A model generated the notes under the pieces. That model was not told the origin of the DNA, made no database searches, and saw only the letters and a list, made by a program, of their open reading frames with translations. From positions 36,300 to 100,299 of the forward strand of contig NIVC01003384.1 in the NCBI GenBank assembly GCA_002269645.1: 64,000 bases of DNA. Reading direction: 5' to 3'. This DNA is from Macrostomum lignano (lineage: Eukaryota). How positions within the stretch are numbered: position 1 is the stretch's first letter; each line of letters begins with the position of its first letter. The position numbers and the translations under genes were made by a program. Of the stretch, positions 16,706 to 64,000 are shown in pieces.

Positions 16706-16895
16706 ATGGCTAAATTCCTATATTTCCATTATTGTGAGAATCGCATTGTTAGCATTCATTTTGGCGCCGCAGGCACTCCTTTTGGCGCCGCAAGCATTCA
16801 TTTTAGCGCTGCAGGCACTCATTTTGGCGCCGCAAGCATTCATTTTAGCGCTGCAGGCACTCATTTTAGCGCCGTAGGCACTCATTTTAGCGCTG
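16706..16895 (+). mobile_element. Truncated copy of a non-autonomous element carrying the 21-bp GGCGCCGCAGGCACTCATTTT minisatellite
   Basis: CTAAATTCCTATATTTCCATTATT..GAGAATC..ATTGTTAGCA followed by repeat units is the inverse of 17792-18190. Confidence 0.75.
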
Positions 16896-17791: not shown

Positions 17792-18253
17792 AAATGAGTG
17801 CCTGCGGCGCCAAAATGAGTGCCTGCGGCGCCAAAATGAGTGCCTGCAGCGCCAAAATGAGTGCCTGCGGCGCAAAAATGAGTGCCTGCGGCGCTAAAAT
17901 GAGTGCCTGCGACGCCAAAATGAGTGCCTGCGGCGCTAAAATGAGTGCCTGCGGCGCCAAAATGAGTGCCTGCAGCGCCAAAATGAGTGCCTGCAGCGCC
18001 AAAATGAGTGCCTACGGCGCCAAAATGAGTGCCTGCAGCGCCAAAATGAGTGCCTGCAGCGCCAAAATGAGTGCCTGCGGCGCAAAAATGAGTGCCTGCG
18101 GCGCTAAAATGAGTGCCTGCGACGCCAAAATGAGTGCTAACAATAAGATTCTCAAAATAAATAATGGAAATGTAGGAATTTAGTCATATACATGTACATG
18201 TTGAATTCTTGGAATTGTCCCTCTCCATCATAAAATCTATGGCGACGCCCCTG
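17792..18253 (-). mobile_element. Non-autonomous hAT-like element end (terminus CAGGGGCGTCGCCAT) with ~16 units of the 21-bp minisatellite
   Basis: The terminus ATGGCGACGCCCCTG at 18239-18253 and its ~110-bp unique flank are shared with 44930-45054. Confidence 0.75.
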
Positions 18254-30474: not shown

Positions 30475-31676
30475 TGAGCCTTGACATCTCAACAATTCCC
30501 CCGTGAGCCTTGGCATCTCAGCAATTCCCCCCTGTGAGCCTTGGCATCTCAGCAATTCCCCATGAGCCTTGACATCTCAACAATTCCCCCCCCGTGAGCC
30601 TTGGCATCTCAGCAATTCCCCCCTGTGAGCCTTGGCATCTCAGCAATTCCCCCCTGTGAGCTTTGGCATCTCAACAATTCCCCCGTGAGCCTTGGCATCT
30701 CAGCAATTCCCCCCTGTGAGCCTTGGCATCTCAGCAATCCCCCCATGAGCCTTGACATCTCAACAATTCCCCCCGTGAGCCTTGGCATCTCAGCAATTCC
30801 CCCTGTGAGCCTTGGCATCTCAGCAATTCCCCCCTGTGAGCTTTGTCATCTCAACAATTCCCCCGTGAGCTTTGGCATCTCAGCAATTCCCCCTGTGAGC
30901 CTTGACATCTCAACAATTCCCCGTGAGCTTTGGCATCTCAGCAATTCCCCCGTGAGCCTTGGCATCTCAGCAATTCCCCGTGAGCCTTGGCACCTCAGCA
31001 ATCCCCCTGTTTGCCTTGGCATCTCAGCAATTCCCCCTGTGAGCCTTGGCATCTCAGCAATTCCCCCCTGTGAGCCTTGGCATCTCAGCAATTCCCCCCT
31101 GTGAGCCTTGACATCTCAACAATTCCCCCCTGTGTGCCTTGACATCTCAACAATTCCCCCGTGAGTTTTGGCATCTCAGCAATTCCCCCTGTGAGCCTTG
31201 ACATCTCAACGATTCCCCCGTGAGCTTTGGCATCTCAGCAATTCCCCCCTGTGAGCCTTGACATCTCAACAATTCCCCGTGAGCTTTGGCATCTCAGCAT
31301 TTCCCCCCGTGAGCTTTGGCATCTCAGCAATTCCCCCCGTGAGCCTTGGCATCTCAGCAATTCCCCCGTGAGCCTTGGCATCTCAGCAATCCCCCCTGTG
31401 AGCCTTGGCATCTCAGCAATCCCCACTGTGAGCCTTGGCATCTCAGCAATTCCCCCGTGAGCTTTGGCATCTCAGCAATTCCCCCGTGAGCCTTGGCATC
31501 TCAGCAATCCCCCTGTGAGCCTTGACATCTCAGCAACTCCCCCGTGAGCTTTGGCATCTCAGCAATTCCCCCCGTGAGATTTTGCATCTCAGCAATTCCC
31601 CCCGTGAGCCTTGACATCTCAGCAATTCCCCCGTGAGCTTTGGCATCTCAGCAATTCCCCCCGTGAGCCTTGGCAT
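30475..31676. repeat. ~29-31-bp minisatellite (GTGAGCCTTGGCATCTCAGCAATTCCCCC)
   Basis: Directly visible; the C-run length varies. Confidence 0.96.
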
Positions 31677-32164
31677 CGGGGAAAATAGGTTTGGCGCCCT
31701 CTCACAATAGTTTTGGCGCCCCTGCTGGCGCCTCCCACCGCAAGAAAAACTCAAATCTACATTTATGCTTGATTTAAACAATACCAAGCTTTCCAAACTG
31801 TGACACAGTCTGAGGTAAAGACTGAAAAGTCTTTTGGTTAAAGAGAAAAGGTGTACATGTACATGTAGGTATTCTCGCAAAAAATCTGTCTCGCAAGAAA
31901 GTTATAACAATCTGCATGACGACAAGTTTATGAAACTGAATTCAAATTTCAGCTCTGAGGTTTTAGTCTGCATCAAATGGTATACATGTTGGTTTATTAC
32001 TTAATCTTTAATTGTCACTGCTATTTTTTAATTTCTTAAAATTTTGGAATCGACGGGTAAGAGATGTCTGAGATGCATTATTAACAGTGGGTAAATTGCA
32101 TGGTGGCTTTCAGTTATGAAAAAACTCATTGACTGCATTTACATGTAAGAATCATTATCAGCAG

Positions 32165-33201: not shown

Positions 33202-34383
33202 ATGAGCTCAGCGTCCAGTGCGAAACGGATGGTGCAGATACCCCCGGGCTTCAAGGACCTGCTGCAAGAGTTCGCTGTCGCTGTGCTCCGCGAAACTCCG
33301 CCGGATGTGGTCGACTTTGCCGTTGATTACTTCACTAAACTGCGCGAGCATCGAGAAGAGGACAGAGGCGACGACAATGACAACGAGGACAAGAACTCCG
33401 CCGATGGCGAGGGCGACTCTGACGTCGACGACGAACCAATTCAGGCGCCGCCGCCGCGTCGAGGAACCCGACGAGTAGCCGTGGCCGGCGAGAGTTTCGA
33501 CCCGGAGAAGGAGGACGACGACCCGACGCCGGTGGCCAACCACCCGAAGACCGAGGAGCAGCGGCAGCGCCTGAACGAGGCCATGAAACACATCCTGCTG
33601 TTCCGCTGTCTGGACGAGGACCAGGTACGTGACGTCATCAACGCGATGTTCGAGCGGCGCTGCGAGCCTGGCGAGAAGGTCATCACGCAGGGCGAGGATG
33701 GCGACAATTTCTACGTGATCGAATCGGGAGTCTACGACATTTACGTCCTGATCAACGGCCAGGACACCAAGGTCGGCCAGTACGATAACAAAGGCTCGTT
33801 TGGCGAGCTTGCCCTGATGTACAACGCTCCGCGGGCTGCCACCATCCAGTGCGCCTCACCCGGCAGCATCTGGGCGATGGACCGCGACACCTTCCGTCGT
33901 CTGGTCCTGAAGAAGGCCTTCCAGAAGCGAGTGATGTACGAGAACCTCATCGACTGCGTGCCGCTGCTCAAGCAGCTGGCGCCCTACGAACGGATGAGCA
34001 TCGCCGACGCGCTGAAATCGAAGATCTACGAGGACGGCGTGCAGATCATCAGGCAGGGCGACCCGGGCAACGAGATGTACTTCATCGAGGATGGCGAGGT
34101 GCGAATCACGCGGGACACCCAGGACGGCAGCGGGGAGAAGGAGCTGTCCAGACTGCACAAGGGCGGCTACTTCGGCGAGTTGGCCCTGCTGACAAAGCAG
34201 CCCCGAGCTGCCAACGTGTACGCCAGCGGCGGCAGGTGCAAAGTGGCCGTGCTGGATGTCGGGTCCTTCGAGCGCCTTCTCGGCCCCTGTCTGGACATCA
34301 TGCGGCGTTCCATTGACAGCTACAAGCAGCAGCTGGAGGCCATCTTTGGCAGCGTTGATGCTGTGCCCGACCTGCGAGCTTGA
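33202..34383 (+). CDS. PRKAR2: cAMP-dependent protein kinase regulatory subunit, type II-like, intronless (393 aa)
   Basis: RII-type D/D domain [36 protein letters not shown], hinge [14 protein letters not shown], and two CNB domains with intact phosphate-binding cassettes [15 protein letters not shown] and [18 protein letters not shown] 33202 (CCAGCCATGA) is preferred over the track's TTG 32809. The symbol is family-level only. Confidence 0.95.
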
Positions 34384-34825: not shown

Positions 34826-37538
<2,713 letters not shown>

Positions 37539-38443: not shown

Positions 38444-39189
38444 TCAAAGCTATCATCTTTGTTTTAATCGTCTAGTGAACACGATTTAAAATCGAGATCC
38501 ATCGAATGATGAATTGAATGAAATACTGAAACTTAATTAAATATTAAAACGAAGTTTTAGAGAGATCTGGATAAAACCTGGAAGGAGTTTTTTCTGCAGT
38601 AAAAAAATAAAAACATTCGTTTTTTGCTAACCGTACGGCCCAAAAAATTCCGCTTTTTGCCTTGTTAAGTGATATTTTTCCTCTTTAAATTAGTATAATT
38701 GGTATATATATATATATCCTCTTATCAGTTTTGGCTTTAAAACTTTTTAAACTTAGCACTTAGTAGTGTTTTGTTCAGCTAAAACGCTAACTTTATTCTT
38801 CAGTTTCATTCATACTTTATTTCTACTGTAAGCGACTGTTCTACTATTTTTACTATCCACAAATATTATATTATATCACATATTATATAGCTATAAGTCT
38901 TACTCTCAATGTAATTTGCAGCTGTAGTATCCACAAGCTGTATTACTTTTACATGCAGTGTAAAAGCATGACCTACGAGTAAAATATGCAACCGCGGTCG
39001 CGAATACTAAACCTGCACCTAGATTGAAGCCATAATAGTCGTTTTAAGTAAGTATAAGCATTAATTTTGGTAATTGTTGATAATTTCATGGTATTATAGG
39101 AGCATAAATATACAGGTGTACTGTAGCTTATATATATATTTATAAATATGTGTACGTCATAAATAACTAGCTAGTTATAATTGCACATT

Positions 39190-40200
39190 AGTGACCAAGC
39201 GAGAGCGAAAGCAAAGCGGAGCGCACAAAGCGAAGCGGTCTCCAAAACCCAAAGAAAGCCGTCAGGGATAAAGAAAAAGAGAGAAGACAGAAAAAAAATA
39301 GCGCGGCCACTCCATCAGCAAAGGAGATCGTAGCCTCAGCAGCCTGTTGAAACTGAGGCAGGTAGCGCTGCACGGCATCACTCCTCCAGTCTCCAATGCG
39401 CATGATGTCGGCCACTGGGAGACCCGGCAAGGCAGCCCAGGTCGCCCCACCTCTGCGCAGGCTGTGTGCGGAGAAGGAACCCTTTCTGAAGCCAGCCGCA
39501 GAAAATTTCTCGCGGAGGAAGCAGTCCAGATGCGTCGCGGTTAGCAGGCGCTGGCTGCCCCTGTCGTCGTGGTACGACCAAAGCGGCGAATCTGCGGCAC
39601 GAATGTGCAGCTCGACAGCTCTCACCGGGCACAGAGCGGGTCGATGTGACAGCCTCGGTAGGAGCACTCGGTGACTGCGCTCCTTGAACTGGATCGCCTT
39701 GCCGAACTCGCAGCGAACAACCAGACCTTTCGGATGCTTGAGCAGATCAGCGCGCCGTGTCAGTGCCGGGCCCTTTCCAGTTCGGGGGAGTAGGCTGTAT
39801 TTTCGCAACATCCCCCACCGCATCAGCATCGTGGGCGACACTGGCCCTTTCCGGCTAGCACGCAGTCCGAGGACCCGCTTGGCACCACGCAATAAGTGAA
39901 CAGCGGCGGCATGCTTGGTCAGGTCTGGTGCGGAGTTTAAGCGGAACCAGACCGACAGAGAACTGGCGACCGCTGAGAGAGTCTGGTGCAGCTTGGCGGC
40001 CTGAAAATGAAGAAAGGAGGCGTGGCCGAGCCAAAAGCGTGCAGGTGCCGAGTTTGGAGTACATAAGGTACTCGTATATAATAGCCAGCGGAGGGGGGCG
40101 GGGCTAAGTACAGCCCGCCCCAAGCAGATGCACAAGGGCAGGGGGTGGCTGATCACTAAAGCTGGTTTGCACAAGTTGCGCGCACCTATGCAAACCATGA
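39190..40200 (-). mobile_element. Degenerate DIRS/Ngaro-type retroelement fragment encoding a tyrosine recombinase
   Basis: The minus-strand ORF contains LLRGAKRV...RKGPVSP, MLRK, KAIQFKER, LCPVRA and FSAHSLRRGGATWAA..GLPVADIMRIGDWRSDAVQRYL, which is the R-HxxR-W-Y catalytic set of DIRS-class recombinases. The helix before MLRK appears deleted, and no RT/RNaseH ORF is present. Confidence 0.85.
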
Positions 40201-40314: not shown

Positions 40315-40536
40315 CAGGGGAGCACGAGAATTTCCCGCAGGAATTTTTCCCGCCGAGCTTTCCCCGCAGGAGCTTTCCCGCACGAGATTTTCCCGCAGCG
40401 AGAGTTTCCCGCAAGAAATTTCTCGTGATTGCCTGTTTACCTTAAGAAAGAAATTGTAAAAAGGAAAGCTATTAGCAGAGACGCGATTTTCTTTGATAAA
40501 TTCGACACAGGCAGCCAGCCAGCCAGCCAGGCAGGC

Positions 40537-40597
<61 letters not shown>

Positions 40598-40601
40598 GCC
40601 G

Positions 40602-40685
<84 letters not shown>

Positions 40686-40689
40686 GCCG

Positions 40690-40729
<40 letters not shown>

Positions 40730-40733
40730 GCCG

Positions 40734-40793
<60 letters not shown>

Positions 40794-40817
40794 GCCGGAC
40801 AGACAGACAGACAGCCG

Positions 40818-40861
<44 letters not shown>

Positions 40862-40987
40862 GGTAGGAAGGTAGGAGGGTAAACAGGCAATCACGAGAAA
40901 TTTCTTGCGGGAAAATCTCGGCGGTAAAAGCTCGGCATGAAAATCTCGGCGGGGAAATTTCCTGCGGGAAATTCTCGTGCTCCCCTG
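40315..40987. mobile_element. MITE with ~110-125-bp inverted arms (CAGGGGAGCACGAGAATTTCCCGCAGGAA...) enclosing a (CAGA)n microsatellite
   Basis: The left arm 40315-40440 is the inverse of the right arm 40879-40987. (GACA)n occupies 40515-40860. The flanks ATCGCTAA and TTGGCTAA match at 6/8 (decayed TSD?). Confidence 0.85.
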
Positions 40988-42619: not shown

Positions 42620-42959
42620 CAGTGGCGTAGCCAGGAATTTCAATTGGGACGGGGGGCACGTTGGCTTGGCTGGCCATGCCTTATGCCATTGCTACTTTTG
42701 GCACTCATTTTGGCGCCGCAGGCACTCATTTAGGCGCCGCAGGCACTCATTTTGGCGCCGCAGACACTCATTTAGGCGCCGCAGGCACTCATTTAGGCGC
42801 CGCAGGCACTCATTTTGGCGCCGCAGGCACTCATTTTGGTGCTGCAGGCACTCATTTTAGCGCTGCAGGCACTCATTTTGGCGCCGCAGGCACTCAATTG
42901 TCTCATGGTTTTTGGTACCCGCCGCGCCCAATCCCACCCCACCCCTTGCTACGCCACTG
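42620..42959. mobile_element. 340-bp hAT-type MITE (TIR CAGTGGCGTAGC) carrying ~9 units of the 21-bp GGCGCCGCAGGCACTCATTTT minisatellite
   Basis: Perfect 12-bp TIR and perfect 8-bp TSD CTGTATGA at 42612-42619 and 42960-42967. Confidence 0.93.
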
Positions 42960-49599: not shown

Positions 49600-52500
49600 A
49601 TGAGCAAAAATTTCTCTGAATCAGATAAGAGTCTGCTTTGCAATACAATAGCCACTATTGCTATCACAGCTAATAGTGATAGCTCTGTAAATAGCGGATG
49701 CAAAGTTTTATCAAAGCATTTGCTTCCTCTAAAGCCATATGATTGGGTTGAACTTTATAAGGTAATAATTGATTACCACTTCTAAGTCTTAATAAAAAAT
49801 TAAGCATATTGATTCTAATTTTAAGATAAAGAACTTTCTTTTGTAGACAAATCACAATGCTAATGAAGTCAATGCATTTACACTAACACTATCAACTAAA
49901 AAAGTTTTTTTGGACAACTTGTTGGAGTCAGTAAGTTTAAAATGTTGTATTAAAATGATTCTTGCATAAATAGTTAAACTGTTTGAATAATTTAAATTCA
50001 AGAATGGGGATTTGATACCTTGAAGGGGATTTAGGATCTCAATCCTACCTTGAATGGGATTAAGGATCTCAGTCATACCTTGGAGGGGATTCGATCTTAG
50101 ACATACCTTGGAGGGTATTTGAGATCTCAGACATACCTTGGAGGGGATTTGGGATCTTAGACATACCTTGGAGGGGATTTGGGATCTTAGACATACCTTA
50201 GACATCTTAGACATCTTAGACATCTTAGATCTTAGACATCTCAGACATACCTGGAAAGGGATTTGGGATCTCAGTCATACCTGGAAAGGGATTTGGGATC
50301 TCAGTCATACCTGGAAAGGGATTTGGGATCTCAGTCATACCTGGAAAGGGATTTGGGATCTCAGTCATACCTGGAAAGGGATTTGGGATCTCAGTCATAC
50401 CTGGAAAGGAATTTGGGATCTCAGTCATACCTGGAAAGGGATTTGGGATCTCAGTCATACCTGGAAAGGGATTTGGGATCTCAGTCATACCTGGAAAGGG
50501 ATTTGGGATCTCAGTCATACCTGGAAAGGGATTTGGGATCTCAGTCATACCTGGAAAGGAATTTGGGATCTCAGTCATACCTGGAAAGGGATTTGGGATC
50601 TCAGTCATACCTGGAAAGGGATTTGGGATCTCAGTCATACCTGGAAAGGGATTTGGGATCTCAGTCATACCTGGAAAGGGATTTGGGATCTCAGTCATAC
50701 CTGGAAAGGGATTTGGGATCTCAGTCATACCTGGAAAGGGATTTGGGATCTCAGTCATACCTGGAAAGGGATTTGGGATCTCAGTCATACCTGGAAAGGG
50801 ATTTGGGATCTCAGTCATACCTGGAAAGGAATTTGGGATCTCAGTCATACCTGGAAAGGGATTTGGGATCTCAGTCATACCTGGAAAGGGATTTGGGATC
50901 TCAGTCATACTTGGAAAGGGATTTGGGATCTCAGTCATACCTGGAAAGGGATTTGGGATCTCAGTCATACCTGGAAAGGAATTTGGGATCTCAGTCATAC
51001 CTGGAAAGGGATTTGGGATCTCAGTCATACCTGGAAAGGGATTTGGGATCTCAGTCATACTTGGAAAGGGATTTGGGATCTCAGTCATACATGGAAAGGG
51101 ATTTGGGATCTCAGTCATACCTCGAAGGGGATTTAATAACAATCTGTCATAACTAATCCCAGTCAATCAGCCATTCTCTCTGTCTCGCCCGAATAGACAA
51201 CCAGATCCCTGTTGCGCAATCATCTGGCTAGCCATTTCGGGCCACTGTCCAGCCTCCACTTGATGAGGCGCAATCGCGGCGGTGGCAGCCGACTAACCGG
51301 CAGCGCCATAGCTGAGTTTGCCTCGCCTCAGTCGGCCACCAGCTGCTTGGCAGCGGAGCCTCCCCAGCTGACCATTCACGGGTCGCCGTGCCCGCTACTC
51401 GACAAAGATCCCAGCGGCTGCGGCGACGGCGGGCGACCAAGGCGACGTCGATGTAATCTGCTGCGAGCGTCGCCTTTCTATGAAAAAGCTATCCGTGAAA
51501 CCGATCCCAGCCCCATGGAATCTGTTGATCCTAACAATTTCTATGGCCAAGATGACGGAGAGGAGGCTGAGGACAAATTGGCAGTTCATCAACGTCGAGC
51601 TGAACACGCCAATCAGTGCCTGCTGTTCAAACTCAATCCGATGGCTTTTAGAGCTATTTTGGAGCGACTGGATTTGAAAGATTGGTTTAGACTGTTGGTG
51701 AGACCTTACTGTGCTTGTTTCATAACCCTTAAATTAATTCTCAGGTGAGAATCTCCCCAGAATGTCTCTTAGGTGAGAATCTCCCCCGCCGCCAAGAATG
51801 ACTCTCAGGTAAGAATCTCCCTCTGAATAATTCTCAGGTGAGAATCTCCCCAGAATGATTCTCAGGTGACAATCTCCCCCAGAATGACTCTCAGGTGAGA
51901 ATCTCCTCCAGAATGATTCTCAGGTGAGAATCTCCTCCAGAATGATTCTCAGGTGACAATCTCCCCCAGAATGACTCTCAGGTGAGAATCTCCCCCAGAA
52001 TGACTCTCAGGTGAGAATCTCCTCCAGAATGACTCTCAGGTGAGAATCTCCTCCAGAATGACTCTCAGGTGAGAATCTCCTCCAGAATGACTCTCAGGTG
52101 AGAATCTCCTCCAGAATGACTCTCAGGTGAGAATCTCCCTAGAATGATTCTCAGGTGAGAATCTCCCTAGAATGGTTCTCAGGTGAGAATCTCCCTAGAA
52201 TGGTTCTCAGGTGAGAATCTCTCCCCAGAATGATTCTCAGGTGAGAATCTCCCTCAGAATGATTCTCAAGTGAGAATCTCCCTCAGAATGATTCTCAAGT
52301 GAGAATCTCCTCCAGAATTATTCTCAGGTCAAAGCAAAGCGCCCACAACCCCGTCGGTGTCCGCAGGAGGTGTGCAGCTGCACACATCACCGGGTACGCC
52401 TCGCGCTGACAGCCACCCGTCAGTTTCGACTGGATGGGTCGCTGTTCCGACGCGGTTTTCCAGTCCCTTCGCCGCCATTAAACGACAGCCTCTGCATGCG

Positions 52501-55500
52501 ATTGCTGGGCCAATTATCCACAACGCTGACTTGCCTAACTGTCAATCTGGCGGATTACAGTCAGCGCAGCATTAGCGGCAAACTGCTGATTGACATTGCG
52601 CGACAATTCCCTGCTTTGGAGAGTCTGGAACTCGTGCCTGTACAGCTAAGCGCGGCCGACTGCCGATCAGCCGGTATCGCGGGGCTTCAGCGACTCGCTC
52701 GACTGCGCCTGCTGATGCCGCCGCCCGAGCAGAGGTTTGTCGCTAGCAGGGGAGCTTACGGTGGCCTTGGATTCAGCAGCAGCTTCAGCAGCGGCTACGG
52801 CGACTGGACTGGGGACGAGTGTCGAATCACTGAGGATGGCCTCTGGCACCTGCTGAAGGTGATGAATTGTTTGATGAGTTGATAACGGATGCTGGGTTTC
52901 GGTAGAGATGATGGATTCTGGGTTCTGGTAGAGACTAAGGATTCTGGGTTTCGGTAGAGATGATGATGGATGCTGGGTGTCAGTAGAGATGATGATGGAT
53001 GCTGTGTTCCAGTAGGGATGATGATGGATGCTGGTTGTCAGTGGAGATGATGATGAATTCTGGGTGTCAGTGGAGATGATGATGGATTCTGGGTGTCAGT
53101 AGAGATGATGATGGATGCTGAGTGTTAGTAGAGATGATGATAGATGCTGGGTGTCAGTAGAGATGATGATGGATGCTGGGTGTCAGTAGAGATGATGATG
53201 GATTCTGGGTGTCAGTAGAGATGATGCTGGGTGTCAGTAGAGATGATGATGGATGCTGGGTGTCAGTAGAGATGATTATGGATGCTGAGTGTTAGTAGAG
53301 ATGATGATGGATGCTGGGTGTCAGTGGAGATGATGATGGATGCTGGGTGTCAGTAGAGATGATGATAGATGCTGGGTGTCAGTAGAGATGATGATGGATG
53401 CTGAGTGTCAGAACCTAAAGCCGCTCCCCACCGCACGCAGACCGTGGGTCCCAGACTGGAGGAGCTTCGCGTCCCGGCCGCCGGCCTCAGCGGCAAGTGC
53501 TTCCACTTCCTGACCGACCGCCTGACCATCCTGGAGCTGGTTGGTGTCGTCTCGCCGCGCGTACTTCGCCGATTGACCGAAGCCGCCTGCTGTCGGTCGC
53601 TTCGCTGCCTCCTGGTTGTCGCCGCTCCGCCAAGCCGCACTCCCGCTGGCTGTCGTCTTGCCGACTGGCTCGACTGGCAGCCAAGCGACCTCTACGCCCG
53701 ATTGCCGCGTCTGTGCATCGCCGACTTTGCCGGCCGCGGCGTCAGCTGCTCGGCTCGTCACGTTGAGCTGCCGGTCGGACAGGAGATCGGCTACTTCGGA
53801 CGTCGGCACGGCGATTTGGGATCGGCAGATATTGGACAGGCCAGGCGTGGCGAGAGATGGCTGAGCGTGCTCACCGCGTTCACCTGCGTTTCCTGCCTGG
53901 TGCTCACGGATACGTCTGTGAGTTGGTTGATGGATGATGGGATTTTGGGATTGATGGATGATGGGATTTTGGGATTGACAAATGATGGGATTTTGGGATC
54001 GACGGGTGATGGGATTTTGGGATTAACGGATGATGGGATTTTGGGATTGATGGATGATGGGATTTTGGGATTGATGGATGATGGGATTTTGGGATTGATG
54101 GATGATGGGATTTTGGGATTGATGGATGATGGGATTTTGGGATTGACGGATGATGGGATTTTGGGATTGACCGATAATGGGATTTTGGGATTGATAGATG
54201 ATGGGATTTTGGGATTGACGGATAATGGGATTTTGGGATTGATGGATGATGGGATTTTGGGATTGATGGATGATGGGATTTCGGGATTGATGGATGATGG
54301 GATTTTGGGATTGACGGATGATGGGATTTTGGGATTGACCGATAATGGGATTTTGGGATTGATAGATGATGGGATTTTGGGATTGACGGATGATGGGATT
54401 TTAGGATGAACGAATAATGGGATTTTGGGATCGACAAATGATGGGATTTTGGGATTAACGGATGATGGGATTTTATGATTGTTGAATGATGGGTTTCGGG
54501 GATTTGAGGATAAAGATTGGAGATTTGGGTTGAGATCTTTAGACTGGGTTTAGTTGCATTGCATTGTGCATTGGGTGATGGCGTGTTAGGCTGTGCATGT
54601 TTAAGTAAGTCGATGTGGGTTCTCTCGGATCGTGTCTAGAACATGCACTGCCCGCTACCCCTGGCCATGGCCAGGTGGACGACCAGTGTCTGCAGGCGGT
54701 GAGCCAGCGCCTGTCCAGCAGTCTGCAGGCCCTGTGCCTCACCCACTGCACCCGGATCAGCGCCTCAGGCTTTTGCGCGCTCGCCGAGTGCTCCAAATTG
54801 CGTCGGCTCCGAGTTTCCTGCACGCAGTTCGACCTCGGCGTTTCAACCCGTCTGCCTCCGCCGGGACTGCAGGAGCTGGCGGTGGCCTCCTGCCACCGGC
54901 TGGGCCAGCCTGTGCAGCCCGGCGTGCTGCGACGCTTCCTGGCACTTCGCCAACTCGTCAGTCTCGACCTGTCCTTCTGCGTCGGACTGCCGACTGCCGA
55001 CGAGATTGCCGATTGTCTTCGTCGGACCGACAGCGTCGCTGCCGCTGCTAAGCTAACCATCTACTGTAGGGGTGTCAGCGTGCCGATTGCGCAGGTTAGT
55101 ACGATGAAGCTTTGGCGTCTCAGCCTCGGCAATCCCATTTAACCCGTTAACAACGTTACCGTGACAAGAATCTTGTGACTTCTCTTCAATTTCTTGACTA
55201 TCTGACGATCTGAATGCGGTTATTCTTACTGTTAAAGAGTCATACTCGTACCTTTATGAAACTTCAGGAGCAACTGGACTCGATGAATCTAAATAGGCCA
55301 GTCGAGTTTAACAACCATCGATATCCATCGTCGTCATTGACTTGTACTCAGCAGGACGGCTGGTCCAATAGCGACTGGACCGCAACAGCCGCCCAGTCGG
55401 TACGGCCAATGTGCCTGCCGACACACTGGGTTCACCCCACTGCCACCGAAGCAGCCCGCCAGCAGGACCTGGAAGGCGGCTACGAGCACTATGTGGGCGA

Positions 55501-55615
55501 GTTCGACCTCATAGAGGACGAGCACGACTTCGATTTTGACGATACGGACGATGAAGATTATACAGACGAAGACTTAATCGACTGGGTTGACGACGGATCA
55601 GATTTTAGCTATTGA
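49600..55615 (+). CDS. F-box/leucine-rich-repeat protein (FBXL-like, ~827 aa, 7 exons) with acidic C-terminus
   Basis: Phase-0 GT-AG exons: 49600-49761, 49847-49930, 51197-51697, 52367-52858, 53441-53917, 54675-55094, 55268-55615. The F-box-like LLFKLNPMAFRAILERLDLKDWFRLL|EVCS spans a junction. Cysteine-containing LRRs include FPALESLEL, LVLTDTS|VDDQCLQAV, LQALCLTHCTRISASGFCAL and LVSLDLSFC. The first two exons and some acceptors are less certain. Confidence 0.75.
50030..51132. repeat. Highly homogeneous 30-bp intronic minisatellite (CTGGAAAGGGATTTGGGATCTCAGTCATAC)
   Basis: About 30 near-identical units; source of the 332/313/297-aa pseudo-ORFs. Confidence 0.97.
51742..52327. repeat. ~28-31-bp intronic minisatellite (CTCAGGTGAGAATCTCCTCCAGAATGAYT)
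   Basis: Directly visible; about 19 units. Confidence 0.95.
52890..53410. repeat. ~29-bp intronic minisatellite (GATGATGATGGATGCTGGGTGTCAGTAGA)
   Basis: Directly visible. Confidence 0.94.
53925..54480. repeat. 24-bp intronic minisatellite (GATGGGATTTTGGGATTGATGGAT)
   Basis: Directly visible; starts a few bases after the donor at 53918. Confidence 0.95.
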
Positions 55616-56115
55616 TGACAGAAGGCTGCGATGATGCTGTCAGCATGCTCTGTGTTGCATTTTGCTCACCCTTTAAACCAGTTTAAATATACAAACGTTA
55701 GAAACTATTAACTACCAATAACAACACTAAAAAGCTGCACTTCAAAAGTTTTATAATAGTACTTGAACTTAATTTGCTTCCCGATATATATTGTAAACGT
55801 CATTCATAAACGCTTAAACAAACAGATCCGATACCTTATGTTACTTTAGTATAGAGCATGGCTGACAGGCTACGATTTACGTACTGTATAAAATGCGTCT
55901 GCGCTTTACAGTGCAGAGCTGTAGAGACTGCAGTTGTGTAGTATGTAACTGAGTATGATGCAACATTGATTAGTATCCGGCCAGCACATGTAATTACAAT
56001 TCGCTATAAGTTGCAGTTTGATCAGCAGGCATCCAGCAACTCGTACAGGTCGGTAGGAGCGCCGCGATCAAGCCAGCATACAGGTTGGTATAGCGCGATC
56101 CGCAACGCACATCGA

Positions 56116-56241
56116 TCACTTCTTCTTATGACCGCCCTTGGCAGCGGCCTGCTCGCCCTCGGCTTTTTCCGGCTGCTGCTTGGCGGCGTCCTTGTTGGCA
56201 TCGGCGGCCTTCTTGTCGGCGGCGGCTTTCTTGGCAGGCAT
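56116..56241 (-). CDS. Microprotein A, copy 1 (41 aa: MPAKKAAADKKAADANKDAAKQQPEKAEGEQAAAKGGHKKK)
   Basis: ATG in context CAAACATGC through TGA, with GC3-rich codons (GCC/AAG/CAG) inside AT-richer flanks. It is paralogous to microprotein B. It is below the track's 60-aa cut-off. Confidence 0.7.
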   Translation of the reverse strand: MPAKKAAADKKAADANKDAAKQQPEKAEGEQAAAKGGHKKK

Positions 56242-56963
56242 GTTTGTCTGTTGAGATTAGGAAGCTGATGCTTGAAGCATCAATTTGAGAAGCGAGCAGC
56301 TGCGGTTTGCAAGGTGACCAACGTCAACTTCAAGTATAGCTAGCTGGCTGTACATCCTCATTAGAAAAACTATCTAGATATGTCCTAAAGGGCACTTCTT
56401 CTTATTTAACCGCTTATTGGAGCAGTGCAGCTCTACAAGGAACATTGGTGCATATCTAGCCTCTAGTTGGATGTGCTGGACAACGAAATCTAGAGGATGC
56501 TATATCAAGCCAAATGCAAGTAATGCCCCTTTCTCTGTCTGCAACTGCTGATCTAACACAAAACATCCTAAGCATATAGGGAAACAGAGAGCATTTAAAG
56601 AACGAGAGCCGAAAACACCTGCTTGCTTTAAAAATACTGTCCAATATGTAATTAGGAAATGCTACTGTAATTATTCTACAATCAAACAACTTTTTTCAAA
56701 GGATCAATTTACAACTATAAGCTTTCGTCAGCACGTGAGTAAGGTTAGTACAGTACAGAATACAGTAAGTAACCTAATTGCAGTTTCAGAGCTGGATGCA
56801 GCGACTCTTTAGCCCTAACAAAGACGATACGCTAATGCGGACAGATTATAGTATACTGTACAGGTATAGAGAGAGCTCAGAGTTCCACTCAGTCACGCCA
56901 ATAGTAGGCCTGGCTGTCATGCGGTGCAGAGCACACCTAACAATTGATCTCTCTGAAATCGCA

Positions 56964-57104
56964 TCACTTCTTCTGACCGGCCTTGGCGGCAGCGCCACCA
57001 GCCTGCTGTTGTTGTTGCTGCTGCTTTTGCTGCTTGGCGTCCTTGTTGGCATCGGCTGCCTGCTGCTTGCCGGCTCCCTGCTGCTGGTTCTGCTTGGCTG
57101 GCAT
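56964..57104 (-). CDS. Microprotein B, copy 1 (46 aa: MPAKQNQQQGAGKQQAADANKDAKQQKQQQQQQQAGGAAAKAGQKK)
   Basis: ATG in context CAGAATGC through TGA. It shares MPAK, AADANKDA, KQQ and KK-TGA with A. The track starts it at an upstream TTG (57167). Confidence 0.7.
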   Translation of the reverse strand: MPAKQNQQQGAGKQQAADANKDAKQQKQQQQQQQAGGAAAKAGQKK

Positions 57105-57991
57105 TCTGTGTTTTGCTTTTTGTGCTTGAAAGCTGCTTAGAGCTGCAATCGGGGCGACAGTAAGCAAGTCATATAGTGCTCACACAACAACAACACACAC
57201 ACAGCAGCGAACGAAGTCTGCGTGCATCTTAATCAAGTAGCTAGCTAGAATTTTTAAGTGCTACCAACCAGAGTATAACTTAGCTAAATACCAAAGGAAT
57301 TTCACTCTTTCTACTCATACAACTAATGATCGACGCTGGTTGCATTGATAAACCTGATGACCTGACCAGCTCGCAAGGGATGCCTAGAAATTATACATTT
57401 ACGAGCCGTATACTCCATTTCCACAGATTAGTCTACAAAAGCCCAGTAGCTAATTATTGCACTGCAAAATGTCTAACTCTTATACATAAACTGAAACAGC
57501 CCCACTGTCAGCCTGTGAGCGAGAGGCCCCTAAGCCTTGAGGAGCATGAAACTATATACGTGACTAGGAAGCAGCAAAAATATTGGTAAAAGTAGAGCTC
57601 AAGCCGAAAAACGATTGTTGGTTGTTGCAACAACTTTGTAAGTAACTGATGCACCCAGTACAACAATGTAATTTACGACAAGTACATGACTGCCCGTCAG
57701 AACAGAGCAGCTGGTACCATAGTATAGAGCATGGCTGACAGGCTACGATTTACGTACTGTATAAAATGCGTCTGCGCTTTACAGTGCAGAGCTGTAGAGA
57801 CTGCAGTTGTGTAGTATGTAATAACTGAGTATGATGCAACATTGATTAGTATCCGGCCAGCACATGTAATTACAATTCGCTATAAGTTGCAGTTTGATCA
57901 GCAGGCATCCAGCAACTCGTACAGGTCGGTAGGAGCGCCGCGATCAAGCCAGCATACAGGTTGGTATAGCGCGATCCGCAACGCACATCGA

Positions 57992-58117
57992 TCACTTCTT
58001 CTTATGACCGCCCTTGGCAGCGGCCTGCTCGCCCTCGGCTTTTTCCGGCTGCTGCTTGGCGGCGTCCTTGTTGGCATCGGCGGCCTTCTTGTCGGCGGCG
58101 GCTTTCTTGGCAGGCAT
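57992..58117 (-). CDS. Microprotein A, copy 2
   Basis: Identical ORF to copy 1. Confidence 0.7.
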   Translation of the reverse strand: MPAKKAAADKKAADANKDAAKQQPEKAEGEQAAAKGGHKKK

Positions 58118-58840
58118 GTTTGTCTGTTGAGATTAGGAAGCTGATGCTTGAAGCTGCAATTTGAGAAGCGAGCAGCTGCGGTTTGCAAGGTGACCAACGT
58201 CAACTTCAAGTATAGCTAGCTGGCTGTACATCCTCATTAGAAAAACTATCTAGATATGTCCTAAAGGGCACTTCTTCTTATTTAACCGCTTATTGGAGCA
58301 GTGCAGCTCTACAAGGAACATTGGTGCATATCTAGCCTCTAGTTGGATGTGCTGGACAACGAAATCTAGAGGATGCTATATCAAGCCAAATGCAAGTAAT
58401 GCCCCCTTTCTCTGTCTGCAACTGCTGATCTAACACAAAACATCCTAAGCATATAGGGAAACAGAGAGCATTTAAAGAACGAGAGCCGAAAACACCTGCT
58501 TGCTTTAAAAATACTGTCCAATATGTAATTAGGAAATGCTACTGTAATTATTCTACAATCAAACAACTTTTTTCAAAGGATCAATTTACAACTATAAGCT
58601 TTCGTCAGCACGTGAGTAAGGTTAGTACAGTACAGAATACAGTAAGTAACCTAATTGCAGTTTCAGAGCTGGATGCAGCGACTCTTTAGCCCTAACAAAG
58701 ACGATACGCTAATGCGGACAGATTATAGTATACTGTACAGGTATAGAGAGAGCTCAGAGTTCCACTCAGTCACGCCAATAGTAGGCCTGGCTGTCATGCG
58801 GTGCAGAGCACACCTAACAATTGATCTCTCTGAAATCGCA

Positions 58841-58981
58841 TCACTTCTTCTGACCGGCCTTGGCGGCAGCGCCACCAGCCTGCTGTTGTTGTTGCTGCTG
58901 CTTTTGCTGCTTGGCGTCCTTGTTGGCATCGGCTGCCTGCTGCTTGCCGGCTCCCTGCTGCTGGTTCTGCTTGGCTGGCAT
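58841..58981 (-). CDS. Microprotein B, copy 2
   Basis: Identical ORF to copy 1. Confidence 0.7.
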   Translation of the reverse strand: MPAKQNQQQGAGKQQAADANKDAKQQKQQQQQQQAGGAAAKAGQKK

Positions 58982-59868
58982 TCTGTGTTTTGCTTTTTGT
59001 GCTTGAAAGCTGCTTAGAGCTGCAATCGGGGCGACAGTAAGCAAGTCATATAGTGCTCACACAACAACAACACACACACAGCAGCGAACGAAGTCTGCGT
59101 GCATCTTAATCAAGTAGCTAGCTAGAATTTTTAAGTGCTACCAACCAGAGTATAACTTAGCTAAATACCAAAGGAATTTCACTCTTTCTACTCATACAAC
59201 TAATGATCGACGCTGGTTGCATTGATAAACCTGATGACCTGACCAGCTCGCAAGGGATGCCTAGAAATTATACATTTACGAGCCGTATACTCCATTTCCA
59301 CAGATTAGTCTACAAAAGCCCAGTAGCTAATTATTGCACTGCAAAATGTCTAACTCTTATACATAAACTGAAACAGCCCCACTGTCAGCCTGTGAGCGAG
59401 AGGCCCCTAAGCCTTGAGGAGCATGAAACTATATACGTGACTAGGAAGCAGCAAAAATATTGGTAAAAGTAGAGCTCAAGCCGAAAAACGATTGTTGGTT
59501 GTTGCAACAACTTTGTAAGTAACTGATGCACCCAGTACAACAATGTAATTTACGACAAGTACATGACTGCCCATCAGAACAGAGCAGATGGTACCATAGT
59601 ATAGAGCATGGCTGACAGGCTACGATTTACGTACTGTATAAAATGCGTCTGCGCTTTACAGTGCAGAGCTGTAGAGACTGCAGTTGTGTAGTATGTAATA
59701 ACTGAGTATGATGCAACATTGATTAGTATCCGGCCAGCACATGTAATTACAATTCGCTATAAGTTGCAGTTTGATCAGCAGGCATCCAGCAACTCGTACA
59801 GGTCGGTAGGAGCGCCGCGATCAAGCCAGCATACAGGTTGGTATAGCGCGATCCGCAACGCACATCGA

Positions 59869-59994
59869 TCACTTCTTCTTATGACCGCCCTTGGCAGCGG
59901 CCTGCTCGCCCTCGGCTTTTTCCGGCTGCTGCTTGGCGGCGTCCTTGTTGGCATCGGCGGCCTTCTTGTCGGCGGCGGCTTTCTTGGCAGGCAT
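59869..59994 (-). CDS. Microprotein A, copy 3
   Basis: Identical ORF to copy 1. Confidence 0.7.
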   Translation of the reverse strand: MPAKKAAADKKAADANKDAAKQQPEKAEGEQAAAKGGHKKK

Positions 59995-60717
59995 GTTTGT
60001 CTGTTGAGATTAGGAAGCTGATGCTTGAAGCTGCAATTTGAGAAGCGAGCAGCTGCGGTTTGCAAGGTGACCAACGTCAACTTCAAGTATAGCTAGCTGG
60101 CTGTACATCCTCATTAGAAAAACTATCTAGATATGTCCTAAAGGGCACTTCTTCTTATTTAACCGCTTATTGGAGCAGTGCAGCTCTACAAGGAACATTG
60201 GTGCATATCTAGCCTCTAGTTGGATGTGCTGGACAACGAAATCTAGAGGATGCTATATCAAGCCAAATGCAAGTAATGCCCCCTTTCTCTGTCTGCAACT
60301 GCTGATCTAACACAAAACATCCTAAGCATATAGGGAAACAGAGAGCATTTAAAGAACGAGAGCCGAAAACACCTGCTTGCTTTAAAAATACTGTCCAATA
60401 TGTAATTAGGAAATGCTACTGTAATTATTCTACAATCAAACAACTTTTTTCAAAGGATCAATTTACAACTATAAGCTTTCGTCAGCACGTGAGTAAGGTT
60501 AGTACAGTACAGAATACAGTAAGTAACCTAATTGCAGTTTCAGAGCTGGATGCAGCGACTCTTTAGCCCTAACAAAGACGATACGCTAATGCGGACAGAT
60601 TATAGTATACTGTACAGGTATAGAGAGAGCTCAGAGTTCCACTCAGTCACGCCAATAGTAGGCCTGGCTGTCATGCGGTGCAGAGCACACCTAACAATTG
60701 ATCTCTCTGAAATCGCA

Positions 60718-60858
60718 TCACTTCTTCTGACCGGCCTTGGCGGCAGCGCCACCAGCCTGCTGTTGTTGTTGCTGCTGCTTTTGCTGCTTGGCGTCCTTGT
60801 TGGCATCGGCTGCCTGCTGCTTGCCGGCTCCCTGCTGCTGGTTCTGCTTGGCTGGCAT
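60718..60858 (-). CDS. Microprotein B, copy 3
   Basis: Identical ORF to copy 1. Confidence 0.7.
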   Translation of the reverse strand: MPAKQNQQQGAGKQQAADANKDAKQQKQQQQQQQAGGAAAKAGQKK

Positions 60859-61745
60859 TCTGTGTTTTGCTTTTTGTGCTTGAAAGCTGCTTAGAGCTGC
60901 AATCGGGGCGACAGTAAGCAAGTCATATAGTGCTCACACAACAACAACACACACACAGCAGCGAACGAAGTCTGCGTGCATCTTAATCAAGTAGCTAGCT
61001 AGAATTTTTAAGTGCTACCAACCAGAGTATAACTTAGCTAAATACCAAAGGAATTTCACTCTTTCTACTCATACAACTAATGATCGACGCTGGTTGCATT
61101 GATAAACCTGATGACCTGACCAGCTCGCAAGGGATGCCTAGAAATTATACATTTACGAGCCGTATACTCCATTTCCACAGATTAGTCTACAAAAGCCCAG
61201 TAGCTAATTATTGCACTGCAAAATGTCTAACTCTTATACATAAACTGAAACAGCCCCACTGTCAGCCTGTGAGCGAGAGGCCCCTAAGCCTTGAGGAGCA
61301 TGAAACTATATACGTGACTAGGAAGCAGCAAAAATATTGGTAAAAGTAGAGCTCAAGCCGAAAAACGATTGTTGGTTGTTGCAACAACTTTGTAAGTAAC
61401 TGATGCACCCAGTACAACAATGTAATTTACGACAAGTACATGACTGCCCGTCAGAACAGAGCAGCTGGTACCATAGTATAGAGCATGGCTGACAGGCTAC
61501 GATTTACGTACTGTATAAAATGCGTCTGCGCTTTACAGTGCAGAGCTGTAGAGACTGCAGTTGTGTAGTATGTAATAACTGAGTATGATGCAACATTGAT
61601 TAGTATCCGGCCAGCACATGTAATTACAATTCGCTATAAGTTGCAGTTTGATCAGCAGGCATCCAGCAACTCGTACAGGTCGGTAGGAGCGCCGCGATCA
61701 AGCCAGCATACAGGTTGGTATAGCGCGATCCGCAACGCACATCGA

Positions 61746-61871
61746 TCACTTCTTCTTATGACCGCCCTTGGCAGCGGCCTGCTCGCCCTCGGCTTTTTCC
61801 GGCTGCTGCTTGGCGGCGTCCTTGTTGGCATCGGCGGCCTTCTTGTCGGCGGCGGCTTTCTTGGCAGGCAT
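61746..61871 (-). CDS. Microprotein A, copy 4
   Basis: Identical ORF to copy 1. Confidence 0.7.
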   Translation of the reverse strand: MPAKKAAADKKAADANKDAAKQQPEKAEGEQAAAKGGHKKK

Positions 61872-62594
61872 GTTTGTCTGTTGAGATTAGGAAGCTGATG
61901 CTTGAAGCTGCAATTTGAGAAGCGAGCAGCTGCGGTTTGCAAGGTGACCAACGTCAACTTCAAGTATAGCTAGCTGGCTGTACATCCTCATTAGAAAAAC
62001 TATCTAGATATGTCCTAAAGGGCACTTCTTCTTATTTAACCGCTTATTGGAGCAGTGCAGCTCTACAAGGAACATTGGTGCATATCTAGCCTCTAGTTGG
62101 ATGTGCTGGACAACGAAATCTAGAGGATGCTATATCAAGCCAAATGCAAGTAATGCCCCCTTTCTCTGTCTGCAACTGCTGATCTAACACAAAACATCCT
62201 AAGCATATAGGGAAACAGAGAGCATTTAAAGAACGAGAGCCGAAAACACCTGCTTGCTTTAAAAATACTGTCCAATATGTAATTAGGAAATGCTACTGTA
62301 ATTATTCTACAATCAAACAACTTTTTTCAAAGGATCAATTTACAACTATAAGCTTTCGTCAGCACGTGAGTAAGGTTAGTACAGTACAGAATACAGTAAG
62401 TAACCTAATTGCAGTTTCAGAGCTGGATGCAGCGACTCTTTAGCCCTAACAAAGACGATACGCTAATGCGGACAGATTATAGTATACTGTACAGGTATAG
62501 AGAGAGCTCAGAGTTCCACTCAGTCACGCCAATAGTAGGCCTGGCTGTCATGCGGTGCAGAGCACACCTAACAATTGATCTCTCTGAAATCGCA

Positions 62595-62735
62595 TCACTT
62601 CTTCTGACCGGCCTTGGCGGCAGCGCCACCAGCCTGCTGTTGTTGTTGCTGCTGCTTTTGCTGCTTGGCGTCCTTGTTGGCATCGGCTGCCTGCTGCTTG
62701 CCGGCTCCCTGCTGCTGGTTCTGCTTGGCTGGCAT
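62595..62735 (-). CDS. Microprotein B, copy 4
   Basis: Identical ORF to copy 1. Confidence 0.7.
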   Translation of the reverse strand: MPAKQNQQQGAGKQQAADANKDAKQQKQQQQQQQAGGAAAKAGQKK

Positions 62736-63625
62736 TCTGTGTTTTGCTTTTTGTGCTTGAAAGCTGCTTAGAGCTGCAATCGGGGCGACAGTAAGCAAGT
62801 CATATAGTGCTCACACAACAACAACACACACAGCAGCGAACGAAGTCTGCGTGCATCTTAATCAAGTAGCTAGCTAGAATTTTTAAGTGCTACCAACCAG
62901 AGTATAACTTAGCTAAATACCAAAGGAATTTCACTCTTTCTAACTCATACAACTAATGATCGACGCTGGTTGCATTGATAAACCTGATGACCTGACCAGC
63001 TCGCAAGGGATGCCTAGAAAAAATATACATTTACGAGCCGTATACTCCATTTCCACAGATTAGTCTACAAAAGCCCAGTAGCTAATTATTGCACTGCAAA
63101 ATGTCTAACTCTTATACATAAACTGAAACAGCCCCACTGTCAGCCTGTGAGCGAGAGGCCCCTAAGCCTTGAGGAGCATGAAACTATATACGTGACTAGG
63201 AAGCAGCAAAAATATTGGTAAAAGTAGAGCTCAAGCCGAAAAACGATGTTGGTTGTTGCAACAACTTTGTAAGTAACTGATGCACCCAGTACAACAATGT
63301 AATTTACGACAAGTACATGACTGCCCGTCAGAACAGAGCAGCTGGTACCATAGTATAGAGCATGGCTGACAGGCTACGATTTACGTACTGTATAAAATGC
63401 GTCTGCGCTTTACAGTGCAGAGCTGTAGAGACTGCAGTTGTGTAGTATGTAATAACTGAGTATGATGCAACATTGATTAGTATCCGGCCAGCACATGTAA
63501 TTACAATTCGCTATAAGTTGCAGTTTGATCAGCAGGCATCCAGCAACTCGTACAGGTCGGTAGGAGCGCCGCGATCAAGCCAGCATACAGGTTGGTATAG
63601 CGCGATCCGCAACAACGCACATCGA

Positions 63626-63750
63626 TCACTTCTTCTTATGACCGCCCTTGGCAGCGGCCTGCTCGCCCTCGGCTTTTTCCGGCTGCTGCTTGCGGCGTCC
63701 TTGTTGGCATCGGCGGCCTTCTTGTCGGCGGCGGCTTTCTTGGCAGGCAT
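63626..63750 (-). pseudogene. Microprotein A, copy 5, with a 1-bp deletion (frameshift or sequencing error)
   Basis: It reads GCTGCTTGCGGCG where other copies read GCTGCTTGGCGGCG, giving 125 nt instead of 126. Several other small indels cluster in this last unit. Confidence 0.55.
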
Positions 63751-64000
63751 GTTTGTCTGTTGAGATTAGGAAGCTGATGCTTGAAGCATGAATTTGAGAA
63801 GCGAGCAGCTGCGGTTTGCAAGTGACCAACGTCAACTTCAAGTATAGCTAGCTGGCTGTACATCCTCATTAGAAAAACTATCTAGATATGTCCTAAAGGG
63901 CACTTCTTCTTATTTAACCGCTTATTGGAGCAGTGCAGCTCTACAAGGAACATTGGTGCATAATCTAGCCTCTAGTTGGATGTGCTGGACAACGAAATCT

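Follow-up and report, generated by a model that had tools for sequence, protein, structure and literature searches.

We analysed a window of 64,000 nucleotides (nt) from the flatworm Macrostomum lignano, namely positions 36,300 to 100,299 of the forward strand of contig NIVC01003384.1 in assembly GCA_002269645.1 (Mlig_3_7), and all positions given below without a contig name are counted from the first letter of this stretch. Self-comparison and the spacing of anchor sequences show that the window ends in a tandem array of 1877-bp units (55848-64000), which carries two small open reading frames (ORFs), A and B, on the minus strand and extends past the window end. The units are arranged head to tail, are 1876-1879 bp long, and are present in at least 4.3 copies, with the anchors in ORF A lying 1876, 1877, 1877, and 1879 bp apart. 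Only 1-4 mismatches and a few indels distinguish the full units from one another, and the proposal of an earlier note, made from the letters of this DNA, that a homogenised two-gene cassette of about 1877 bp is repeated from 55848 onwards is borne out. The left edge of the array is sharp, unique sequence running up to CCTTATGTTACTT and the array beginning with TAGTATAGAGCATGG at 55848 (plus strand). With respect to transcription, the part of the array that lies in the window is its downstream end, where the terminal unit is approximately 292 bp shorter relative to the phase of the array start on a second contig (L002, see below). No second copy of the unit or of either peptide was found in the remaining 56 kb of the window.

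ORF A (MPAKKAAADKKAADANKDAAKQQPEKAEGEQAAAKGGHKKK; 57992-58117, minus strand) encodes 41 amino acids followed by a stop codon, and the ORF listing places identical copies at 56116-56241, 59869-59994, and 61746-61871, together with a fifth, frameshifted copy at approximately 63626-63750, all on the minus strand. ORF B (MPAKQNQQQGAGKQQAADANKDAKQQKQQQQQQQAGGAAAKAGQKK; 58841-58981, minus strand) encodes 46 amino acids plus a stop codon and recurs unchanged at 56964-57104, 60718-60858, and 62595-62735. Peptide A would have a mass of 4.2 kDa, an isoelectric point (pI) of 9.8, a grand average of hydropathy (GRAVY) of -1.5, and a net charge of +5, the corresponding values for peptide B being 4.8 kDa, 10.2, -1.8, and +6. 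Both peptides contain 2-6 acidic residues and lack L, I, V, F, W, Y, and C. They share an MPAK start, an AADANKDA core that is encoded by identical DNA (GCCGATGCCAACAAGGACGCC), and a KK-TGA end. Number, orientation, length, charge, composition, and common motifs all agree with the earlier note, which had also taken the two ORFs for paralogues. AlphaFold predicts two low-confidence helices (residues 3-22 and 27-36; mean predicted local distance difference test score of 65), a model that would fit a peptide which lacks order or is helical for short times, and is not diagnostic. The codon usage of A and B is skewed towards GCC (20/24), AAG (17/19), and CAG (15/19), compared to 36%, 71%, and 68%, respectively, in neighbouring genes.

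The AUG codons of A and B are each the first in their own exon, both have an A at -3, and neither leader holds another AUG. Upstream extension of ORF A is impossible because its leader contains an in-frame TAA, as read from the sequence. Overlapping ORFs of 59 and 68 codons (MPTRTP...) are present in the +1 frame at 56022-56201 and 56846-57052 (minus strand), with equivalents in every unit. They begin at an ATG within the perfectly conserved core GCCGATGCCAACAAGG and are probably incidental, since they continue beyond the main-frame stop codon into sequence that is not homologous between A and B.

Further copies of the unit are found on three contigs of the same assembly, which we denote L001 (NIVC01004846.1), L002 (NIVC01000056.1), and L003 (NIVC01003793.1). 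The window array is 99.7% identical to those on L002 and L003, which supply the upstream junction and at least 11.5 further units reaching up to the contig end, so that the array has at least about 12 copies. Interior units on L002 are 100% identical among themselves and only edge units deviate, and 27 of the 29 copies of A and B with an intact anchor in this main array (window, L002, and L003) are identical and intact. L001 carries a second array with a 1870-bp unit that differs at 47 of 1882 aligned columns (about 2.5%); here B is unchanged, and A has one N>S change and a deletion of one in-frame codon (3 bp). These at least two diverged versions of the array are either homeologues or haplotypes of the hidden polyploid M. 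lignano. Identity within an array is far above that between arrays, and concerted evolution is therefore indicated.

Copies at the edges differ from the identical interior copies at approximately 56279, 55848-56116, and 63400-64000 in the window, at 395-415 on L001, and at 11629-13505 on L002. The last downstream copy has GATG in place of the GCAG acceptor before A (approximately 56279) and lacks a TTA in the 3' untranslated region (UTR) of A, and the copy at approximately 63.4-64.0 kb, at the window end, contains several indels of 1-3 bp, one of which shifts the frame of A. Such divergence is the pattern expected if homogenisation is weaker at array ends, and may also stem from assembly error.

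Comparison of the unit with itself reveals a single significant internal similarity, between positions 158-331 and 1169-1360 of the unit (69% identity over 200 columns, E = 1e-14). This block begins at ATTGCAG/CT (slashes mark splice junctions throughout), 36 nt upstream of the ATG of A and 38 nt upstream of that of B, and stops 5-6 nt past the TGA. The similarity of A and B consequently comprises the acceptor, the 5' UTR, and the coding sequence (CDS), roughly 190 nt in all, and elsewhere in the unit, the final 234 nt of the A exon included, divergence has left no recognisable similarity. Judged from this alignment, A and B are paralogues that arose by an old duplication. Three indels of 12, 6, and 3 nt, all multiples of three, separate the two coding sequences, and the ORF, its start, and its stop are kept both between A and B and from one array to the other. 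The best case for coding is one of position, in that conservation follows the ORF rather than the exon, and not one of the ratio of non-synonymous to synonymous substitution rates (dN/dS). The earlier view that coding constraint had acted on an old duplication stands insofar as similarity is limited to one block that tracks an ORF, but the coding signal itself is weaker than that view implied, as the substitution counts given below make clear.

Evidence for transcription comes from the public gene models. The Mlig_3_7 annotation was made solely from RNA-seq transcript assemblies, spliced leader (SL) reads, and poly(A) reads, the assemblies being divided wherever experiments had located an SL trans-splice or poly(A) site and then submitted to an ORF caller (PMC5730564), and its gene models are therefore indirect transcript evidence. 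Three public "hypothetical proteins" (P0001-P0003) overlap ORFs A and B. Two of them, P0002 and P0003, can be rebuilt exactly as two-exon GT-AG splices into the B acceptor (CCCCGATTGCAG/CTCTAAGC) that end in ORF B. In P0002, reconstructed on L003, the first exon lies in the A 3' UTR and ends at the donor TTTATACA/GTACGT, 234 nt past the A stop codon, from which a 615-nt intron leads to the B acceptor, so that the A 3' UTR and the B exon of the same unit are joined. In P0003, a GC-rich exon approximately 1.8 kb upstream of the first B exon, with the end CAAGCCAT/GTAAGT, is spliced to the B acceptor. On the M. lignano contigs, the counterpart of the B acceptor is thus used for cis-splicing by two annotated transcripts, and another gene model begins directly after it. 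This model, for B on L001, has its start in the first codon phase that follows the acceptor AG; no upstream stop codon explains such a start, which is how a trans-spliced or exon-initial 5' end would appear. Transcription of the ORF strand and use of the B acceptor are supported by these models, and minus-strand transcripts, whose absence the earlier note would have counted against it, are represented by gene models built from RNA-seq in which the acceptor that precedes ORF B is used. The peptides had also been called unannotated; this is correct for the intact ORFs of 41 and 46 codons, but the ORFs do appear within P0001-P0003, whose frames are longer owing to a frameshift or to translated UTR.

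These splice sites can be placed in the window array, all on the minus strand. The B 5' leader (38 nt, 57105-57142) and its acceptor GATTGCAG/ (AG at 57143-57144) occupy 57105-57150 and recur every 1877 bp. The A 5' leader (36 nt, 58118-58153) and the acceptor-like AATTGCAG/, which aligns with the B acceptor and is presumably used in the same way, occupy 58118-58160. The 3' untranslated part of the A exon (234 nt) reaches from the stop codon to the donor TTTATACA/GTACGT (57756-57991, GT at 57756-57757), and in the copy nearest the array end this GT lies at 55883-55884. The 615-nt intron from this donor to the next B acceptor (57143-57757) is present in every unit and is the one recovered in the exact reconstruction of P0002 on L003.

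Upstream of the array, and outside the window, two GC-rich leader exons stand in an AT-rich region of L002 (10001-10124 and approximately 10452-10552). The leader exon of P0003 is also present in an independent UniProt entry, P0004, where it is joined to an alternative second one. P0003 and P0004 (automatically named "Secreted protein") translate these leader exons, which are probably non-coding, and the two database entries are therefore likely annotation artefacts. A further public gene model on L002 (17552-27111, plus strand) has a 153-residue product and spans five units, starting in the phase of a B leader and ending at a later B stop codon. No two-exon structure reproduces this product, and 228 three-exon structures do; the product was not among the results of a second protein search.

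Spliced leader addition at the same sites is suggested by their sequence. The M. lignano acceptor motif for SL trans-splicing is [T/C]TNCAG and the SL ends in AUG (PMC8629364), and the TTGCAG that precedes both A and B fits this motif. Trans-splicing at the A and B acceptors is probable because they match the consensus and one gene model begins exactly at that of B. An SL AUG joined to either leader would, on our reading of the sequence, open a frame of only 2 or 7 codons that is closed by TAA. Two features of an operon can be discerned, since P0002 and P0003 place co-oriented genes on one primary transcript and a [T/C]TNCAG acceptor lies before both A and B, directly ahead of the start of the L001 model for B. 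A TATA-driven start at the 5' end of B, for which CACTATATG approximately 33 nt upstream might be invoked, was rejected as sole explanation because the same AG serves as a cis acceptor in two transcripts. Moreover, the window does not contain the 35-nt SL of M. lignano, which speaks against an SL-RNA array and is what a trans-acting donor would lead one to expect.

Efforts to assign the unit to a known class of repeat or RNA gene were unsuccessful, and no transposable element, satellite with incidental ORFs, or RNA-gene array can be recognised in it. No ORF of the unit has a Pfam domain, and a transposable element is therefore not suggested; apart from the A/B block it has no internal repeats, whether inverted or direct, and the window's other 56 kb contain no copies of it. 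We have likewise considered a satellite-like or non-autonomous repeat in which the ORFs are incidental and the gene models reflect read-through or spurious transcription from the leader exon. Tandem repeats make up 15% of the M. lignano genome (PMC5730564), the minisatellite load of the window agrees with this figure, the contigs break within the array, and the interior copies are identical, all of which would suit such a repeat. The unit is, however, long, complex, and non-palindromic, encodes no protein domain of a transposable element, and has no copies in the flanking 56 kb. Its canonical splice donors and acceptors are used by transcripts, and it contains an ancient paralogous pair whose similarity tracks an ORF. 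We therefore disfavour this explanation and regard it as unlikely.

Short repeated exons alternating in tandem with introns of approximately 600 nt, at least one of which per unit is demonstrated, resemble the host arrays of small nucleolar RNAs (snoRNAs), and the unit might similarly host snoRNAs or microRNAs in its introns, as the SNORD115/116 hosts do, with the exons and ORFs belonging to a mere host transcript. Searches against Rfam, however, gave no match at the gathering threshold for the window or at E<=1 for one full unit, ARAGORN found no tRNA, and a motif scan of both strands of the unit did not reveal any C/D box pair that is flanked by a terminal stem. Sliding-window folding of the gene strand of the unit never gave anything better than z = -2.2, and on the opposite strand two windows with z of about -3.4 coincide with the GC-rich complement of the CDS. 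In addition, the introns diverge more than the exon parts between the two arrays (P of about 0.03, one exon boundary being inferred). A small-RNA host array is accordingly also disfavoured, and we consider it very improbable.

Protein searches place the two peptides in M. lignano alone. A profile of A and B compared with 5.8 billion proteins in a word-indexed search gave a single match, a 71-residue M. lignano "hypothetical protein" that is a frameshifted copy of A, and an exhaustive HMMER search over 1.84 billion protein representatives added two M. lignano entries that end in the complete B peptide. Neither peptide matches any Pfam-A family (hmmscan, E<=10), and a PDB profile search with the A/B alignment was empty. 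Since no Pfam family and no PDB chain matches, membership of the HMGN, linker histone, TMA7, SERF, and LEA families is excluded. HMGN proteins (Pfam HMG14_17) had been considered, and the RRSARLSA core of their nucleosome-binding domain is absent from both peptides. Linker histones H1/H5 and H1-like sperm proteins had been considered too, and 41 or 46 residues are too few for their winged-helix domain (Pfam Linker_histone), on either side of which they carry Lys-rich tails. TMA7, SERF/4F5, and the LEA families were rejected for want of a Pfam-A profile match at the same threshold. The earlier failure to recognise the peptide family, along with the statement that there is neither an HMGN motif nor a histone fold, is thus extended to the Pfam, PDB, and HMMER searches. 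Exact-sequence look-ups of A, B, a 67-residue B extended to a TTG codon, and the neighbouring ORF for a protein kinase A (PKA) regulatory subunit returned nothing on record in the assembly index.

We propose, with about an even chance of being right, that the locus is an orphan two-gene cassette of small ORFs (smORFs) that has been amplified and homogenised, that is transcribed as a long precursor and spliced in cis and probably to the SL, and that is translated into two basic peptides. The principal rival, which we consider possible rather than probable, is a repetitive long non-coding RNA (lncRNA) with tandem exons, in which the ORFs would be untranslated or without peptide function and the A/B block would be an element that acts at the RNA level or a side effect of gene conversion. 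A number of observations weigh against the smORF cassette, and most of these suit an lncRNA. The 41 codons that can be aligned between A and B comprise 20 identical, 4 synonymous, and 17 non-synonymous pairs, and differences fall on the three codon positions in the ratio 10/9/14 with no clear third-position excess, so that the substitution pattern appears to carry a weak coding signal at best. Between the arrays, 2 of 34 mutational events lie in the CDS, which is fewer than expected and not significant (P = 0.13). Both ORFs are of low complexity, with runs of GCC, AAG, and CAG that can mimic ORFs and codon bias alike, and the +1-frame ORF is open in both. The HMMER search over 1.84 billion representatives found no homologue outside M. 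lignano, and a degenerate DNA pattern (MPAK ... ADANKDA) had no match in JGI metagenome contigs. The perfect identity of interior copies may be due in part to assembly polishing. Cis-splicing from the A 3' UTR to the B exon would place B second on a bicistronic RNA, and a long non-coding multi-exon RNA therefore fits equally well; splicing from leader exon to B, together with the non-coding appearance and alternative splicing of the leader exons, points the same way. Neither AATAAA nor ATTAAA, the canonical poly(A) signals, occurs anywhere in the unit. Finally, the gene identifiers are absent from published germline, neoblast, and positional expression tables, and no mention of Mlig029044, Mlig001540, or Mlig030344 was found in the literature or its supplements, although the supplements may be incomplete.

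An lncRNA does not readily account for the extent of the A/B block, which runs from the acceptor to 5-6 nt past the stop codon and not over the whole exon, or for the retention of start, stop, and frame across three indels. The first position of both AUG codons in their exons, with an A at -3 in each case, is also more easily reconciled with translation, and the block has neither a predicted stable structure nor an Rfam match that might identify it as an RNA-level element.

If the smORF cassette is taken as a working model, an old duplication would have given rise to A and B, and the B-A pair would later have been amplified as the 1877-bp unit, with concerted evolution keeping the copies near-identical within each array. 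Transcription of the ORF strand would start upstream of the array and yield a long precursor, onto which the GC-rich non-coding leader exon approximately 1.8 kb upstream of the first B exon would be spliced. The TTGCAG acceptors would be used in cis, from the leader exon to B and from the A 3' UTR donor to B, and would probably also be SL trans-spliced, thereby releasing short capped messenger RNAs. Translation from the first genomic AUG would then yield hydrophobe-free basic peptides of 4.2 and 4.8 kDa that are rich in Lys, Ala, and Gln, have a pI near 10, and are at most transiently helical. Our best guess at their action, on the basis of composition, is either non-specific binding to polyanions (RNA, DNA, the ribosome, or chromatin) or a solubilising role like that of Hero proteins and hydrophilins, and more specific roles in chromatin, in sperm, or as protectants are speculation. 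The high gene dose suggests that the products would be abundant. A more elaborate picture, which we consider possible rather than probable, is that of a new, Macrostomum-restricted family of abundant, hydrophobe-free Lys/Ala/Gln-rich microproteins of 4-5 kDa, encoded in at least 12-16 copies on an SL-resolved precursor, in other words a metazoan "trypanosome-style" array for a polyanion-binding or Hero-like peptide.

The closest analogues in organisation are the alternating arrays of trypanosomatids, the SL-resolved units of M. lignano itself, and tarsal-less, none of which is homologous to A and B. In the alpha/beta-tubulin array of Trypanosoma brucei, and in trypanosomatid arrays more generally, co-oriented alternating paralogous genes are transcribed as a long precursor with an SL acceptor before each coding region, and the copies are homogenised. 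The M. lignano array resembles the tubulin array in the head-to-tail amplification of an alternating pair of paralogues, in their common orientation, in having an acceptor before each ORF, and in the homogenisation of its copies. Tubulins, however, are large and universally conserved, whereas A and B are orphans of 41 and 46 residues for which splicing in cis from unit to unit has been shown and the addition of an SL is inferred. The arthropod gene known as tarsal-less, polished rice, or mille-pattes encodes peptides of 11-32 residues with an LDPTGxY core on one messenger RNA of approximately 1.5 kb. It shares with A and B the presence of several paralogous, very small ORFs with a short conserved core on one RNA, but A and B reside in a genomic tandem array of 1.9-kb units and have no sequence similarity to it. 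Type I antifreeze proteins of flounder are alanine-rich helical peptides of approximately 40 residues encoded by tandemly amplified small genes; A and B lack both their Thr-x10 periodicity and any similarity in sequence, lineage and ecology are unrelated, and the analogy is one of gene organisation only.

With Hero proteins, SERF/4F5, TMA7, and the hydrophilins and LEA proteins, A and B share size or composition class, being very hydrophilic and charged and having low-confidence helices without a hydrophobic core, but this likeness is one of composition and predicted model, there being no sequence relationship by the Pfam and PDB searches above. Hero proteins are defined by heat solubility, abundance, high charge, disorder, and an activity that protects client proteins. 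HMGN proteins, linker histones, and sperm nuclear basic proteins are likewise Lys/Ala-rich and basic with an MPxK-type N-terminus, and some of these families are multicopy. A and B, in contrast, have no RRSARLSA core, winged-helix domain, or Pfam match, and with net charges of +5 and +6 are much less basic than protamine-like proteins. SL operons of M. lignano (PMC5730564, PMC8629364) come from the same organism and resemble the array in having several genes per transcriptional unit, the [T/C]TNCAG acceptor, and the 5' ends of gene models at that acceptor. The published operons mostly contain two or three different conserved genes separated by spacers of approximately 100 bp, with a maximum of nine genes (PMC5730564, PMC8629364), whereas the A/B locus consists of one gene pair repeated at least 12 times with spacers of approximately 0.6 kb that behave as introns.

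The sequence of the array is already public as part of the M. lignano assembly, and the intact peptides are effectively unannotated; A and B are best described as tandemly arrayed candidate smORF genes of restricted taxonomic range. Real peptides would mean that the known proteome of this transgenic flatworm model lacks them and that the overlapping public entries are artefacts, namely a copy of A with a shifted frame, and B joined to UTR that has been translated. Few protein-coding genes of M. lignano would then be as strongly amplified, suggesting a high-abundance product that has escaped annotation through ORF length cut-offs and tryptic proteomics through its many lysines. Most tryptic peptides of A and B are too short, the usable ones being AEGEQAAAK, QNQQQGAGK, and QQQQQQQAGGAAAK. 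The locus moreover lends itself to the question of how a long repetitive precursor is processed in a flatworm, where cis-splicing would be set against SL trans-splicing at one and the same acceptor. Should the ORFs be untranslated, what is left is a spliced lncRNA of repetitive structure in a genome that is rich in repeats.

The remainder of the window is metazoan in character and contains several genes among numerous repeats. The neighbour that converges on the array (51212-55615, plus strand) is a multi-exon gene with ORFs that look like leucine-rich repeats, intronic minisatellites, and a very acidic C-terminal ORF (55214-55615); the pieces of it that were compared with Pfam gave no match. 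Two tandemly duplicated Src-family-like genes, each with SH3, SH2, and tyrosine kinase domains according to Pfam, lie at 8240-9983 and 12865-14522 (both plus strand), and each has one interruption, between the SH2 and kinase domains. An apparently intronless gene for a PKA type-II regulatory subunit (33202-34383, plus strand) encodes an RIIa dimerisation domain and two cNMP-binding domains in a single frame of 393 residues. An ORF of 336 residues (39188-40198, minus strand) with no Pfam match contains AHSLRRGGATWAA, which we take to resemble the tyrosine recombinase catalytic box of Crypton/DIRS-like elements, a resemblance that Pfam did not confirm. This ORF adjoins an (ACAG)n tract flanked by 14/29-bp repeats, the repeats being located at 40322-40422, 40507-40862, and 40897-40977. 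Long minisatellites with periods of 12-60 bp pack the window from 904 to 54504, many of them within or between genes (for example, at 904-2601, 3082-5165, 10649-12021, 30475-31677, and 50015-51134), and one 21-bp unit, GGCACTCATTTTGGCGCCGCA, recurs at 16752-16893, in the opposite orientation at 17787-18137, and again at 42700-42896.

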